A DNA stretch of 64,000 nt from Thalia democratica (Eukaryota), in NCBI GenBank assembly GCA_965202585.1, contig OZ241826.1, forward strand, positions 82,522,001-82,586,000, in the 5' to 3' direction. The notes beneath the pieces are model-generated. The model was given only the letters and a program-made list of their open reading frames with translations. It searched no databases and had not been told where the DNA came from. The position numbers and the translations under genes were made by a program. Shown in pieces: positions 18,194 to 28,237 of this stretch (position 1 is the stretch's first letter; every line of letters begins with the position of its first letter).

Positions 18194-21100
18194 TTAAAAC
18201 CAACTGCTTTTTTGGCTAAGATCAGTATTATTTTTCTTTTTAAGAAGAGCGAGACTTTTTCTTAGTTTGTTCGACGAGGGTCTCATACCAGCGTTCCTAC
18301 TTAAAGCTGGTGCGAGAATTTTATCCTGTAGAAAAAAAAAAACAGTTGAAACAAAAACATTAGAAAATGTTGCAAATTAAACAATAAGATGCATGTATAC
18401 AGAAAACCTCAAAACAAAGTAATTAAGTACTGACCAAACAGTTCAGTTCTGACCAAAAAAACTTCAATGGCAGTCTTCCCTCCTTTGCGTTTTTCACGAC
18501 GCGATCAGTGTCTTCCGCGCTGATTCGGCCGAACGTCAAGATGGCTGTGAGCGCAGCGCAGTAGACGTCCGCCTTCCTGGTGAATTTTCTGTCCCACTGC
18601 GAGGAATTTTTGTTTATTTACCTTAAAATTTTCACTCATCTCCTTTGTTATGCTATTAATAAATATTTTACTTAAATTTTGAAACACTCCTGCTGGTAAA
18701 AATGTACTTTTCATATTATTCAAAAGTAAAAAAAAATTAAATTATCTTGAACGTTTTTATGTTGAATTAAGTGAATAATTTAACAACAGGAATTTAAAAA
18801 AAAAATCTTTTTTATTGTAGAAATGTGTTTAAACTTGACCAAAGTTGTATGTTTATACATGTAAAACTTATTTTGAAAACTTATAAATAGTTCAAAAAGC
18901 CACAAGTCTTTAATATTAAATTCGTCAACATAGTCACAAAAAATTTTATAATTTTTATTTTATTCAACCTAAAACAAAAAATAAACCTGAAATATTGTAA
19001 TCAGTGTAATAAAAAACTTTGGTACTTTACTCAAAAAAAACATATTATGTCTTGCTTATTGTTACCAACTTATCTTTTCCAACACTTTGTAATAAACTTT
19101 AAGAAACTAATAACAAGAAACTATCTTTTTTAAGGAACAAATTGTGTTTTTATAATTGACACAACAATACCTGCTCTGGCGGCATGAAGAGTTCCGTGCC
19201 CACAAAAGTGCGATGCACCACCGTGTCGTTTTCATGCAGACCTGGAATCTTCCATCGCGTCCCTTTTATAAAAATAATACAATAAGTTGATATAATACTT
19301 GAAAGTTCAAATATGAAATTTTAAAGTTATTTTGATAATTAGTGGTTTTTTCTCTTATCTATTCAAGTGCTTTATTATAAATTAAAGTTGAACGATTTGT
19401 TAAATTTGATTAATTGATTGATGATAATAAAAGGAGTTTTCACATGTTCAGCAAAATAGTCAAACAACAAACCAAAGTGCTTAGCCACACCGAAATCAGA
19501 TATTTTTGCGTGTAAACCGGAATCCAATAAAATATTGCTGGGCTTTATATCTCCATGTACAACTTTTTGAGTAAAATGGAGATATTCCAAGCCAGCAAGA
19601 ATCTGCAAAATAGATTAAATATTAGCATTATAGTTTTTAAACATTTAATTTTCGGATATCAGATCAAACTATAAAGATTATATAAGCTTATAAAATAATA
19701 TAACATGTATATTATATTACAAATCTTATAGTGTCTGAAAATTTAAAATTTCATAATTTTATTAATAAATAACACTTTTACTAAATTAAAATCAGTTAAA
19801 AGTTTTTTTTTCTGTTATTGAAAATGCTTATCACTAAATTATTTCTTATAGATTTTAGATAAGTAGCTTCAAAGCAGATAAAAATCAAATAAACGAAAAG
19901 CCTTTGTCAAAAATAAGCTTTAAATGTAACAAAGTAAAACTTTTTTTATTAATTTTGTTTAGATAAAAGTACCTCGTCTACAATCCTTAGATTCAAGTTG
20001 AAATCCGGACTGCCTCCGGAAGTTATAAACTTTCGAAGATCAGTTTTCTGGATTTCTGTCTGAATAATGTAGAGCTTGGAATCTGTATAAGGTTATTAAA
20101 AAACTATTATGTTACTATTATTTCATTTGTTATAAAATAATAGTTTGAAAACATATCAAACAATATTTTTTCTTATTGACCGACAAAAAAGTGCTCAAAA
20201 AGCTTGGTCCTAGGACCTAGTGCACGAAAAACCTTTCGGTTATCGAGTCGCACACCACTGATACCTTTTAGCGTCTTGCCCAGGACAATTATTAAGTATT
20301 CAATAAATAAAACTATTTTACTTAAAAGGTTTAAAAAAGTTTAGGCTTTTTTTTTTAATATTTTATGCCTTAACAAAAATAGTTTAAAATTTTTATTCAA
20401 AAGAAGTTATTTCTAAGTTATAGATTTAAAAACATATTATATTAAACTTGTTTCAATGCTTAACAAGGAAACAGTAACTTAAAAGGTATGTAATCTTACA
20501 AAAGTTTAGTATTAATAGGAATTAAAAAATAAATAAACCTTTAATACAGGTTTTAAAAAATAAAGCTTAATTTTAAAAAAAATTATCATAATTTTTAAAA
20601 TAAGTAGAAAGGATATTTGAAAAGTGATATTAATAAACAAACATAAACGGCTTTTTTGTAAAAATTTTCAATTTTTGATATTTCGTCAACGTAAAAGCAT
20701 CACATAATATCGTGTTTTCAAACCAAATTAAATTCTTTTTATTTAATACTATATACAAATCGAGTTAACTTGTAAGATAACTTACATTTTGGTTCGTAAT
20801 TTCCTCCGATGTTTTTCAGGTCTTCTTGGCTCATGTTGGGGCATGTGAGGAGATGTTGTCTGTAAAAGTTCTAAAATTTAATAATCACTTTACACATTAA
20901 TTTTATTACACAAAGCTTTTCAAAACCATACGAGTTTCATTCTCAAGTGATAAATTTTAAATGAAGCTTGAAAAAAAAATTGTTAAGTGAACAGCTCAAA
21001 AAATAACTCTAAATTATAACGTATGAATAAATTCAAAATTACAAAAATTAGAGATTTAGCAATTAAAAACTAAAGGTATGCTTATTTATAGATTTTTAAT

Positions 21101-27075: not shown

Positions 27076-28237
27076 CGTGGAAGCAGCATTTTGTCAAACA
27101 GTTCTGAAAATAAAAGTATTATTGCAAGTTAGCTTAAAAAAACTAATGTAATAAATATAATAGCTTTGACTTTTAATAGTTTATTTTAATTTCTAAACAA
27201 AAAGTGTTGTAATCGTAATGATGATTCATCTAAATAAAATTTATTTATTTTAAACGGTTTAAATAAAAACACTAAAAATACTTACTGGAGTTAAGCGCTT
27301 GAATATTCTGTTTAATTGAGTCTGAAAAATACATTTTTATTTTGTGCTTTTATTTTGTATTTTACATCAAAAGTTAAAACTTTAACATTTAATAAACTTA
27401 GTGCATTAATATTTGCAATAGTGTTTGACTTAGAGTGGTGATTCTTACCTTAAGGTGTGGTGGAGATTTTTTCCAAGCAAATGCAAATACAAAAGCCAAG
27501 GACCCCAAAACACAAATGATAATCAGAGCAATTGTGGATCCGTCAGATGACTCGACAACGGCATTTGTCTGTGGTACAACATGAGCGATTTCATTCATCT
27601 GACAAATAGCATAAAATGATTCAACCGGTGAGCAAAATCGCATTTCTAGAATTTCCGAGTTAATTAGTATTAGATAATATGGGCAATCCGTAACAATGTC
27701 ATCGATTTTTTTGAAATGGAACCACTTGTTTTGTTTTGGTCCTAACTTTTGCTCTTTTATTATCAAGTGTTTCAAACGATCAAGTTCATCTCGTCCGTCA
27801 ACTTTTAGGAGCTCCGCATTGTGATCATGACAAATGTTCCCAGGGTCTTCATCTGGGTTCACGATGAAAAACTTGATGTCGTCATTGCTACCTATAAAAC
27901 AAAACAACCTGTGTGTATTGTTACAACTTGTTTCTCTCAAAATTTGTTTTAAAATATATTATGTAAAACAAATGTAAAATATTTTTACTCAACAAATAAA
28001 AGGAATGGTTTCATTTTTAGAGTTTGAAAATTTTTCAAAAGTAGTTCGGTTTTTATTATTATTAAAATGAACTGTTTAACTCATATTAAAATATAAAGAT
28101 ATTAAATAGTTCTCAAAGTGATGCGTGTATGTTTACTTAGTTATGATTAAATCATTTCTAAAAATATAATTACCTTCAGTTGTTTTTGAACATAAACCAG
28201 TTTGAACAAAGAACATAACTGTGAGTATAAACAACAT
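27076..28237 (-). CDS. Type I membrane protein: signal peptide + short C-type-lectin-like domain + TM; 3' end unresolved (may splice onto the kinase)
   Basis: Exons 28237-28174 (MLFILTVMFFVQTGLCSKTTE, signal-peptide-like), 27891-27449 (4 Cys in CTLD spacing: ICHDHNAELLKV..DE, TDCPY, FCSPVESFYAICQ; TM IALIIICVLGSLAFVFAFAW), 27321-27286 (TQLNRIFKRLTP), 27103-27076 (NCLTKCCFH); GT-AG sites with consistent phases. Confidence 0.8.

Follow-up and report, generated by a model that had tools for sequence, protein, structure and literature searches.

Could a single animal gene join a C-type-lectin-like ectodomain through the membrane to a kinase of the eIF2-alpha kinase kind, or are these the parts of two neighboring genes? 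The question is raised by the minus strand of a 64,000-nucleotide stretch of the Thalia democratica genome (contig OZ241826.1, positions 82,522,001 to 82,586,000; hereafter the window), in which an initial annotation had seen a signal peptide–lectin–transmembrane part and a kinase part on one strand and had held a fused and a two-gene reading to be equally possible. All sequence features that it listed are indeed present. From the sequence of this locus and its relatives, we consider the fusion of a lectin-fold ectodomain to a kinase in one gene likely, and it is probable that one gene of 13 exons runs from 28237 to 18194 on the minus strand and encodes a receptor kinase with type I membrane topology and a length of ca. 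624 aa.

Gene structure and predicted protein

All exons described here lie on the minus strand. Exon 1 (28174 to 28237) opens with an ATG at 28237, the sole ATG picked by a scan for hydrophobic leaders and preceded by an AG 4 nt upstream (28243-28242), encodes a hydrophobic leader that is probably a signal peptide and ends in phase 1 at gtaatt. Exon 2 (27449 to 27891) carries a four-cysteine ectodomain of ca. 100 aa with a CTLD (C-type lectin-like domain) fold, a short stalk, one transmembrane helix (the single hydrophobic span of 20 residues, with its Kyte-Doolittle peak at residues 137-163) and the juxtamembrane stretch KKSPPHLK, and ends in phase 0 at gtaaga. Two mini-exons of 36 nt with phase 0 at either end follow. 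Mini-exon 1 (27286 to 27321; TQLNRIFKRLTP) has the phase-0 end and the gtaagt donor that had been described before. Mini-exon 2 (27068 to 27103; NCLTKCCFHGKS; donor gttagt) replaces an exon end formerly placed at 27076 and has a counterpart with identical acceptor and donor at 2177-2212 of the related locus L011 (SCLTKFCVRKNP). A generic scan of 11.5 kb for open 36-nt segments of the form AG..GT[AT]AGT returned only the mini-exons.

A long intron consisting mostly of high-copy repeats (25150 to 27067) separates mini-exon 2 from kinase exon 1 (24748 to 25149), which is in phase 0 at both ends and encodes a linker of ca. 110 aa rich in Gly, Glu and Asn as well as the first kinase strand (..YRLQKVLGE). 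The Gly-loop (GAYGTV) and the ATP-anchoring lysine (YALK) are found on kinase exon 2 (23969 to 24051), and the glutamate of helix C and strand 4, corresponding to positions 45-69 of Pfam Pkinase, on kinase exon 3 (23205 to 23315). Kinase exon 4 (20786 to 20859), whose residues are inserted after strand 4 and ahead of strand 5, is required for the frame, the phase being restored between the donor CG/gtatgt and the acceptor cag/AT. Our gene model assigns strand 5, hinge and helix D to kinase exon 5 (19973 to 20082), the activation segment to kinase exon 7 (19171 to 19262), the region of helices F-G (..KADVYCAAL..) to kinase exon 8 (18435 to 18596) and the last subdomain (..GMRPS..) with the stop codon to kinase exon 9 (18194 to 18325), while kinase exon 6 (19473 to 19602) contains the non-RD catalytic loop HGDIKPSN and the DFG motif.

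In the window copy, each of the 13 exons is intact and free of internal stops, and the splice sites are good. The stop-free joined frame of 612 aa reported earlier can be reproduced exactly from the exons used there and the nine kinase exons, with a terminal stop only; since mini-exon 2 is conserved in L011, the product is nevertheless to be read as 624 aa, and this frame is likewise free of stops. The predicted protein would consist of a signal peptide, a compact ectodomain of CTLD fold, one transmembrane helix, two juxtamembrane mini-exons, a disordered linker of ca. 110 aa and an intact Ser/Thr kinase domain whose catalytic loop has HGD rather than HRD and in which one additional exon separates strands 4 and 5.

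The proposed lectin–kinase junction in related loci

The same architecture was sought in relatives and found in loci from ocean metagenomes, so that four diverged loci (the window, L003/L004, L007 and L011/L012) can be compared across the junction. All four have, on one strand, an exon for a CTLD fold and transmembrane helix, one or two mini-exons of 36 nt, an interval of 1.0-2.1 kb and kinase exon 1, with every junction in phase 0 and kinase exon 1 ending in ..LG[EK]/gtttgaaaa. Counterparts of mini-exon 1 with equal size and phases are present in L003/L004/L008, L007 and L011/L012. A second mini-exon candidate in L003 (1766-1797) was rejected, since including it would disrupt the frame and visual inspection of L007 revealed nothing equivalent.

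The acceptor on which the single-gene proposal had relied is real in so far as an AG stands at 25151-25150 and the frame is open from 25149 (EENIEM...). However, this AG belongs to an in-frame stop codon, the TAG by which the frame is closed, and the ATG at 25134 follows five codons on, so that a "phase-0 acceptor" together with a one-in-three phase match is, taken by itself, close to chance. The related loci are more telling. In L003, the first 74 codons of kinase exon 1 (76 from the upstream stop) are without an in-frame ATG, in L007 the same holds for the 72 codons that precede the methionine of GMGD, and no ATG of this exon is common to all loci. The ATG-less part is nonetheless open, with no stops compared to three to four in each other frame (P(open) ~0.007 by shuffling); for kinase exon 1, the frame is open and the other frames have three to eight stops (P(open) 0.001-0.016). 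When this exon was aligned pairwise between the window, L003 and L007, each of the 15 indel tracts in the three alignments had a length divisible by 3, and codons 23-67 gave a dN/dS of 0.3 from small counts of five synonymous and five non-synonymous changes. Because it lacks a start codon yet is open and looks constrained, with indels in threes, kinase exon 1 of L003 and L007 must be an internal exon, and a phase-0 exon from ATG to GT common to these two loci was not found between mini-exon and kinase exon 1. In the window, the five codons before the ATG encode EENIE, and L011, although very diverged elsewhere, has EEALE at the corresponding place. With the layout and phases kept in four loci and a coding, ATG-less kinase exon 1 in two of them, the single lectin–kinase gene is now the best reading.

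Conservation extends into the kinase. Kinase exon 1 shares 70% amino acid identity with its orthologue P0004 and is less diverged from L003/L004 than the introns are, kinase exon 2 is conserved in L003/L004/L005 at 86% and kinase exon 3 is 97% identical to that of L004. The kinase is 86% identical to that of L003, yet the ectodomain module upstream of it is a different one, which indicates a rearrangement at the long intron itself. A signal-peptide exon was sought in L003 and L007 and not found, and the family member L010 showed neither mini-exon nor kinase exon in 2.6 kb of downstream sequence. A word-based protein search with the lectin exon gave no match, and exhaustive phmmer retrieved two exon-sized open reading frames (on metagenome contigs of 630 nt) and one spurious repeat protein. 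Scans of JGI metagenomes with alignments of the lectin part and of kinase exon 1 were without match, and no paralogues were found within the 64 kb of the window.

A compact CTLD fold

The proposal of a C-type lectin-like domain is supported by structure comparison. Such a fold packs two helices against two antiparallel sheets and places the N terminus beside the C terminus. For the AF2 model of the ectodomain (pLDDT 82.4, pTM 0.73), the best 50 Foldseek matches in the PDB are all CTLDs, with a TM-score normalized by query of up to 0.59; VIA-align superimposed 85-101 of the 104 ectodomain residues on CTLDs with Z-scores of up to 8.8, and comparison to Swiss-Prot models likewise pointed to a CTLD. 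Four cysteines (C20, C69, C86 and C96) do not vary among 13 family members and may pair into two disulfides. Language-model look-alikes of the ectodomain are all Lectin_C clusters at 0.89, which we treat as a lead only.

A glycan-binding lectin, as originally envisaged, is not supported. At E <= 1, Pfam assigned no family, and hence no Lectin_C match, to exon 2 of the window, the L003 exon or P0006, and the motifs EPN, QPD and WND are absent from the whole predicted protein of 624 aa. In the AF2 model, the gap from the second core strand (E55-61) to the third (E71-76) amounts to only ca. nine residues and leaves hardly any long loop, an arrangement that marks a compact CTLD. As modeled, the ectodomain is a compact four-cysteine CTLD fold without long loop or calcium/sugar motifs. 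The model of ectodomain plus transmembrane helix can be aligned to CD302 as well as to the final CTLD and membrane span of MRC1, PLA2R and LY75, though these proteins of the mannose-receptor type have full-length CTLDs and short signaling tails without a kinase.

The kinase and its family

The kinase motifs GEGAYG, ALK, HGD, DFG and PPE occur in this order. Its catalytic-loop exon matches Pfam Pkinase at profile positions 107-147 (E 4.8e-14) and scores 52.8 bits with this profile compared to 35.2 bits with PK_Tyr_Ser-Thr; for TKL kinases, a Pkinase score well above that of PK_Tyr_Ser-Thr is not expected. The loop reads HGDIKPSN and not HRDLAARN or the like as in tyrosine kinases, and a lysine at this place is typical of Ser/Thr kinases. 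By this loop and the higher Pkinase score, the kinase is probably of Ser/Thr type. An IRAK/Pelle-type kinase, for which HGDIKPSN had made a candidate, is borne out neither by the Pfam scores nor by the best solved matches, though it is still conceivable.

Its closer affinity was sought by comparing seven individual exon pieces to solved structures. The catalytic-loop piece has GCN2 as best match (E 7e-12, 47.5 bits), ahead of CaMKK1 (42.7) and, in third place, the plant receptor kinase SOBIR1 (41.8). Weaker matches of the N-lobe piece (kinase exon 3; E 0.03-0.5) are headed by GCN2, followed by CaMKII and then PERK and HRI; GCN2, PERK and HRI make up about half of them and have the ..Y..W end of strand 4 in common with it. 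The other five pieces gave nothing family-specific against the PDB, with a weak best match to NEK2 for the activation segment (kinase exon 7) and no match for kinase exon 8, and an Atlas search with the catalytic-loop piece was not family-specific either. Extra residues inserted between strand 4 and strand 5 are a hallmark of eIF2-alpha kinases. Here, ..HFFW and LYIIQTE are ca. 35 residues apart; a separate exon (20859-20786) that has no Pfam counterpart supplies 25 of these. On the Pkinase profile, exon 3 extends to position 69, and the match of the catalytic-loop exon begins at 107. The arginine of HRD is present in the four mammalian eIF2-alpha kinases and replaced in this kinase, which is non-RD as had been noted. 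Of the proposed likeness to eIF2-alpha kinases, there remain two short exon pieces that best match GCN2/PERK/HRI and hint weakly at such an affinity, set against five pieces with nothing family-specific.

Alternative readings

Two adjoining genes would comprise a small, short-tailed CTLD–transmembrane protein ending around 26960 (AATAAA at 26921-26916) and a cytosolic kinase of ca. 427 aa starting from the ATG at 25134, with the mRNA beginning at the AG of 25151-25150 by leader trans-splicing or at a promoter of its own. The ATG 15 nt behind the AG, which is seen in L011 as well as in the window, would suit this arrangement, as would the 1.9-kb interval full of repeats, the missing kinase exon within 2.6 kb of L010 and the independent lectin 3' end that had been suggested at 26969-26916. 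The last of these does offer a possible small exon followed by a stop and AATAAA; its acceptor, however, reads CAA in L011, and we therefore rejected splicing from 27076 to 26969 as a conserved path. What L011 has kept instead is the phase-0 mini-exon 2 with its donor, which needs a downstream partner. The cistrons of tunicate operons are separated by very short stretches and not by 1.9 kb, which also counts against two genes, and neither the kinase exon 1 of L003 and L007, coding throughout without a usable start codon, nor the EENIE/EEALE match ahead of the window's ATG fits a kinase that starts there. We hence regard two separate genes as unlikely. It is more conceivable, if still doubtful, that one locus makes both kinds of product, with cis-splicing yielding the receptor kinase and either leader trans-splicing at 25150 or intron retention or polyadenylation after the mini-exons yielding a free kinase, a decoy receptor devoid of the kinase, or both, a scenario that is compatible with the fusion. 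An ATG follows the shared acceptor only in the window and L011, read-through past mini-exon 2 meets a stop after two codons and an AATAAA ca. 150 nt on, and CTLD–transmembrane genes without a kinase stand next door (29959-30648); L003 and L007, by contrast, could not produce a full free kinase by trans-splicing at the acceptor of kinase exon 1. That the window copy is a decaying or split gene, with repeat insertions having broken the long intron and left lectin and kinase parts unjoined in this species, seems improbable: most of 25148-26937 is indeed high-copy repeat and the swapped ectodomain reveals rearrangement at this intron, but repeats are common in introns, the 13 exons have stayed intact, free of stops and well spliceable by their sites, and kinase exons 2-3 keep 86-97% amino acid identity to L003/L004 next to an exon 1 that has diverged less than the introns.

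Within a fused receptor kinase, which we continue to favor, the enzyme itself may be something other than an eIF2-alpha kinase, namely a general receptor Ser/Thr kinase (IRAK/Pelle/plant-RLK-like or of an orphan branch) with another substrate. We consider this a serious contender that falls somewhat short of even odds. The non-RD loop HGDIKPSN, the third place of SOBIR1 for the catalytic-loop piece (with SOBIR1 and CaMKK within 6 bits of GCN2), the NEK2 match of the activation segment and the lack of an eIF2-alpha-kinase signal in five of seven pieces would all agree with it. It is less easily reconciled with GCN2 being on top for two independent pieces, with the appearance of PERK and HRI for the N-lobe piece, with a strand 4-5 insert that has an exon of its own or with Pkinase outscoring PK_Tyr_Ser-Thr by 52.8 to 35.2 bits.

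Possible mode of action and comparison to known systems

For the fused receptor, we picture that a ligand clusters the ectodomains, a protein-like ligand being more likely than a calcium-bound sugar, and that the clustered kinase domains would meet and undergo trans-autophosphorylation by analogy to PERK/PKR-type and receptor kinases. The kinase might then phosphorylate a cytosolic substrate, possibly eIF2-alpha, and the receptor may in this way shut off translation. Its family would be a fast-evolving one of pelagic tunicates with ectodomain modules swapped from locus to locus, a pattern to be expected if the receptor serves recognition or is of immune type. Taken to its full extent, this scheme suggests multigene cell-surface receptors of pelagic tunicates with rapidly diversifying, swappable CTLD heads wired via one transmembrane helix to an eIF2-alpha kinase, where an extracellular (pathogen or allogeneic) ligand would trigger translation shut-off and the integrated stress response with no intermediate; we put this forward tentatively, as a rather speculative possibility.

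PERK (EIF2AK3) is the obvious point of reference, since it shares with the predicted receptor a type I membrane topology, a kinase on the cytosolic side and a strand 4-5 insert and is among the best solved matches of the N-lobe piece, and activation by oligomerization of its sensor domain is the model that we borrow for this putative receptor. It differs by its IRE1-like luminal sensor in the ER, where we propose a compact CTLD fold presumably located at the cell surface, and by a catalytic loop with HRD and a strand 4-5 insert far longer than the ca. 25-35 aa of the HGD kinase described here, whose likeness to the EIF2AK clade is moreover one of exon pieces. The initial annotation knew of no membrane-spanning eIF2-alpha kinase other than PERK. 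Trypanosoma brucei has one in TbeIF2K2, with a lineage-specific ectodomain facing the flagellar pocket (PMC8200641), and PERK is therefore not the only such design. The shared feature is a lineage-specific ectodomain toward an extracellular-type compartment, a likeness of design; TbeIF2K2 is a protist protein, and its ectodomain is not a CTLD. PKR-sis of cartilaginous fishes, a kinase-only EIF2AK without dsRNA-binding domains, is active when artificially dimerized (PMC11305385), which supports the idea that any clustering module could drive such a kinase, although PKR-sis is a soluble vertebrate protein without ectodomain.

Lectin receptor kinases had been taken for a plant architecture. This is too narrow, as Sweet Tooth of Hydra vulgaris is a receptor tyrosine kinase with four CTLDs and a membrane span (PMC2680970); it shares with the predicted receptor the combination of a C-type-lectin-like ectodomain, transmembrane helix and cytoplasmic kinase in an animal, albeit with four CTLDs and a tyrosine kinase instead of one compact CTLD and a probable Ser/Thr kinase. 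Plant LecRLKs combine a lectin-type ectodomain, a transmembrane helix and a Ser/Thr kinase, act in immunity (PMC7758398) and are described as plant-specific. Their kinases are of RLK/Pelle type, unlike the one studied here, for which Pkinase scores above PK_Tyr_Ser-Thr and two pieces best match eIF2-alpha kinases. A non-RD loop is found in many immune receptor kinases of plants.

Those eIF2-alpha kinases that have been described to date respond to intracellular or ER-luminal stress, i.e., to amino acids, heme, dsRNA or misfolded proteins (PMC11305385). An eIF2-alpha kinase at the plasma membrane, if true, would link extracellular recognition directly to the control of protein synthesis and would constitute a new class of animal eIF2-alpha-kinase sensor as well as an equivalent, in animals, of the lectin receptor kinases of plants. 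Receptor Ser/Thr kinases of animals are, to the best of our knowledge, essentially limited to the TGF-beta receptor family. CTLD-headed Ser/Thr receptor kinases with exchangeable heads would add a receptor class in chordate relatives, convergent with plant immune receptor kinases. Judging by the exon layout, the gene seems to encode a lectin-fold ectodomain coupled across the membrane to an enzyme resembling a stress kinase, a design undescribed in animals, and even if the enzyme were not an eIF2-alpha kinase, the conserved CTLD–transmembrane–kinase gene structure of tunicates would be an undescribed architecture.

Long intron, read data and neighboring genes

The long intron contains a MITE-like element with inverted ends of 34 nt (25672-25705 and 26424-26457), other copies of which occur in the window, and contig depth in three DNA runs reaches 1e4-1e6 in bins between 25148 and 26937, compared to ca. 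200 elsewhere. Runs with the locus comprised DNA runs of two related organisms and one marine metatranscriptome; their reads over the locus represent genomic coverage, repeats and, in the metatranscriptome, a few kinase-exon pieces of a relative, among which kinase exon 2 appears as an exon-sized piece with unlike flanks, and they carry no information on exon junctions. The locus is adjoined at 29959-30648 by CTLD–transmembrane genes that carry no kinase.

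Gene model of the receptor locus

Every feature of the initial annotation, which proposed a lectin receptor fused to an eIF2-alpha-like kinase on the minus strand (28237 to 18194), is present in the very AT-rich window (24% G+C, no N). Its exons, joined with an extra kinase exon (20859-20786) that lies after the third one and restores the reading frame there, give precisely the proposed 612-aa product, with no stop but the terminal one. On the minus strand, the gene starts with an ATG at 28237 and a hydrophobic leader, followed by a 443-nt lectin exon (27891-27449) that encodes a domain with four cysteines, as well as a single hydrophobic span, and ends in phase 0, and by the 36-nt mini-exon 1 (27321-27286), which ends in phase 0 at gtaagt. 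Kinase exon 1 opens on the same strand behind an AG at 25151-25150 with an open frame from 25149 and an ATG at 25134. Adding a second mini-exon (27103-27068 on the minus strand; 36 nt, phase-0/phase-0, donor gttagt; NCLTKCCFHGKS) yields a model of 13 exons and a 624-aa product.

While these features are real, the original clue for joining them is weak as evidence because the AG ends an in-frame, frame-closing TAG, lies only five codons before the ATG at 25134, and agrees in phase with the upstream donor at a one-in-three chance. Whether there is one gene or two could not be settled from the window by itself. We note an AG at 28243-28242 (minus strand), preceded by cattttc and 4 nt upstream of the receptor ATG (ttttcag|GTCA ATG), as a candidate site of the kind where a tunicate spliced leader would join.

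Related loci with a shared exon layout

Kinase exon 1, used as a protein query, retrieved a single orthologous ORF (P0004, 70% identity), on contigs from Tara Oceans marine metagenomes. The related loci L003 and L004 are independent assemblies with 98.8% identity and share 86% nucleotide identity with the window over a stretch that starts within kinase exon 1 and takes in introns 1-2 and exons 2-3, and no nucleotide similarity was detected between them and the window upstream of kinase exon 1. On the same strand, L003 carries a four-cysteine and transmembrane exon of the same family (20% protein identity to that of the window), then a 36-nt, phase-0/phase-0 mini-exon (TRMVNICKSRTQ versus TQLNRIFKRLTP in the window) and, after it, kinase exon 1 in phase 0 behind ttgcag. 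Locus L007, reached via a lectin-exon profile and its cluster members, has the identical layout at about 73% identity to L003 over the whole stretch. In the loci L011 and L012, a lectin exon of the window's sub-type, with an SPP motif following the transmembrane segment, and a mini-exon (TQLDNIFKPLFP) precede a kinase exon 1 that lies 2.1 kb downstream and starts tag|GAGGAAGCTTTAGAAATG (EEALEM, compare EENIEM in the window). The chain of phase-0 junctions is thus common to four diverged loci (window, L003/L004, L007, and L011/L012).

Alignment of the window with L011 shows that the sequence 3' of mini-exon 1 has been kept, including mini-exon 2 (L011: 2177-2212, 36 nt, phase-0/phase-0, SCLTKFCVRKNP), for which the acceptor is identical and the donor is gttagt in both. 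A generic search of 11.5 kb of DNA for 36-nt open segments of the form AG..GT[AT]AGT found the mini-exons alone. Being conserved and followed by a donor, mini-exon 2 has to be spliced to an exon further 3', where kinase exon 1 is the next conserved coding one. The independent 3' end that had been proposed for the lectin gene gives way to this conserved exon; the acceptor of the presumed terminal exon (26971-26970) reads CAA in L011.

Kinase exon 1 and the case for a single gene

Kinase exon 1 has no in-frame ATG in its first 74 codons in L003 (76 from the upstream stop) and none in the 72 codons ahead of the first methionine in L007, and no ATG position is common to all loci. These ATG-less stretches hold 0 stops compared to 3-4 in each other frame, and shuffling puts the probability of staying open at about 0.007 for each. 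When the window, L003, and L007 are aligned in their three pairs, each of the 15 indel tracts has a length divisible by three; codons 23-67 show a dN/dS of 0.3 between the window and L003 (small counts), and kinase exon 1 has diverged less than the introns have. Because exon 1 appears to be coding in L003 and L007 though this first part of it lacks an ATG, its start codon must lie upstream and the exon must be an internal one, as judged from these comparisons. The only conserved coding exons upstream are those of the CTLD-TM part; between mini-exon and exon 1, L003 and L007 have just one ATG in common and no conserved phase-0 exon running from an ATG to a GT.

A live rival, or possibly a co-existing isoform, is a kinase-only mRNA produced by trans-splicing at the acceptor of kinase exon 1, which would find an ATG 15 nt behind this acceptor in the window and in L011. 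In L010 (1069-4109), neither mini-exon nor kinase exon was found in the 2.6 kb downstream of the lectin exon, so that it is either a kinase-less member or has an intron exceeding the contig; its lectin exon is the nearest to the window's among the family (about 40% identity). From a relative, a marine metatranscriptome contained a few kinase-exon pieces, one of them the size of exon 2 and with unlike flanks, and none at the lectin-kinase junction. Given the phase-0 chain in four loci and an exon 1 that is coding without a start codon of its own in two of them, we consider a single fused receptor-kinase gene likely, if unproven.

Comparison of the window (25108-28237) with L003 (1-3090) reveals a mosaic in which similarity starts inside kinase exon 1 and includes the introns; for the lectin exon of the window, the databases searched gave no orthologue. 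Because the kinase half matches L003 so closely and the ectodomain is a different family member, the ectodomain module appears to have been swapped at the long intron. In a comparison of L003 with L007, dN/dS is 0.46 for the lectin exon and 0.85 for the linker, the frame of which is kept.

A compact C-type-lectin-like ectodomain

The lectin exon of the window has no Pfam match, and its sequence relatives are exclusively exon-sized ORFs from marine metagenomes. An AlphaFold model built from a 13-sequence alignment, in which four cysteines are invariant, is confident (pLDDT 82.4, pTM 0.73), and all of the best 50 Foldseek matches in the PDB are C-type lectin-like domains, with VIA-align Z scores of up to 8.8 and 85-101 of 104 residues aligned. 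Swiss-Prot models likewise point to this fold, and CD302 and mannose-receptor-type receptors align including the transmembrane helix. Canonical CTLDs carry a long loop, at the position of which the model has about nine residues, and we found no EPN, QPD, or WND motif in the predicted protein. We therefore read the modelled ectodomain as a compact CTLD: the fold claimed initially is borne out, but a role as glycan sensor is unsupported.

The kinase domain

The kinase domain covers residues of about 315-600 in the 624-aa model. Its catalytic-loop exon hits the Pfam Pkinase profile (E 4.8e-14), and because the motifs GEGAYG, ALK, HGD, DFG, and PPE follow in order, the kinase looks active and of the non-RD type. 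Subfamily searches used separate exon pieces as queries. With the catalytic-loop piece, GCN2 was the top solved match, with CaMKK1 and plant SOBIR1 within 6 bits; with the N-lobe piece, GCN2, PERK, and HRI made up around half of the weak matches and share the ..Y..W end of strand 4. An insert between strands 4 and 5 is encoded by its own exon. Five further pieces gave no family-specific match. The proposed eIF2-alpha-kinase identity, backed by two pieces, is suggestive only; we put kinship with these kinases at slightly better than even, and a translational shut-off is a doubtful reading.

Possible mode of action and known systems

A ligand might cluster the ectodomains and thereby bring the kinase domains together for autophosphorylation. 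Clustering-driven autophosphorylation is how PERK- and PKR-type as well as receptor kinases are thought to act. Artificial dimerisation activates a kinase-only eIF2-alpha kinase (PMC11305385), and the EIF2AK groups given in the same source include no CTLD-headed member. PERK embodies the same idea of a membrane-spanning eIF2-alpha kinase but has an IRE1-like luminal sensor; it is not unique, contrary to what had been assumed, since Trypanosoma brucei has TbeIF2K2, a membrane eIF2-alpha kinase at its flagellar pocket (PMC8200641). Hydra Sweet Tooth also combines CTLD and kinase in one receptor, though with four CTLDs and a tyrosine kinase (PMC2680970). Plant lectin receptor-like kinases, described as plant-specific (PMC7758398), show a similar join of lectin domain and kinase, the latter being of the RLK/Pelle type. 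Our full-text literature searches found no CTLD-headed eIF2-alpha-kinase-like receptor for animals.

Repeats and neighbouring genes

DNA runs with the locus (from two related organisms) cover introns and intergenic DNA evenly, and 25148-26937 is mostly high-copy repeat (depth 1e4-1e6 versus about 200 elsewhere). A MITE-like element at 25672-26457 has 34-nt terminal inverted repeats (88% complementary), a contig depth that climbs to about 1e6 across three DNA runs, and a part repeated at 45565-45778. A short dispersed repeat is present in copies at 25242-25325, 20160-20243, and 36321-36378 (78-81% mutual identity); one of them precedes the acceptor of kinase exon 1 by about 90 nt, and a kinase intron contains another. 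The 2.3-kb kinase intron (23204-20860) contains a 92-codon open stretch (21085-21360, minus strand) that weakly matches the GIY-YIG nuclease family (Pfam E 0.009) and may be what is left of a Penelope-like retroelement.

Head-to-head with the receptor gene lies a 230-aa single-ORF gene without kinase part (29959-30648, plus strand), and no kinase follows downstream of it within the window. Its product combines a CTLD-like domain (FWIGLD, conserved Cys) with one transmembrane helix and a short tail. Pfam gave no match for it, but every Atlas look-alike is Lectin_C (0.93, 175 shared features). Two long minus-strand ORFs (3158-4033, 291 aa; 54841-55440, 199 aa) have weak Arrestin_C and Myb-like matches only. 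At 48285-49187 (minus strand), two adjoining open stretches, the downstream one (48285-48731) with Kelch repeats (Pfam Kelch_1, E 5e-18) and the upstream one at 48768-49187, are likely to be exons of a gene with Kelch repeats.
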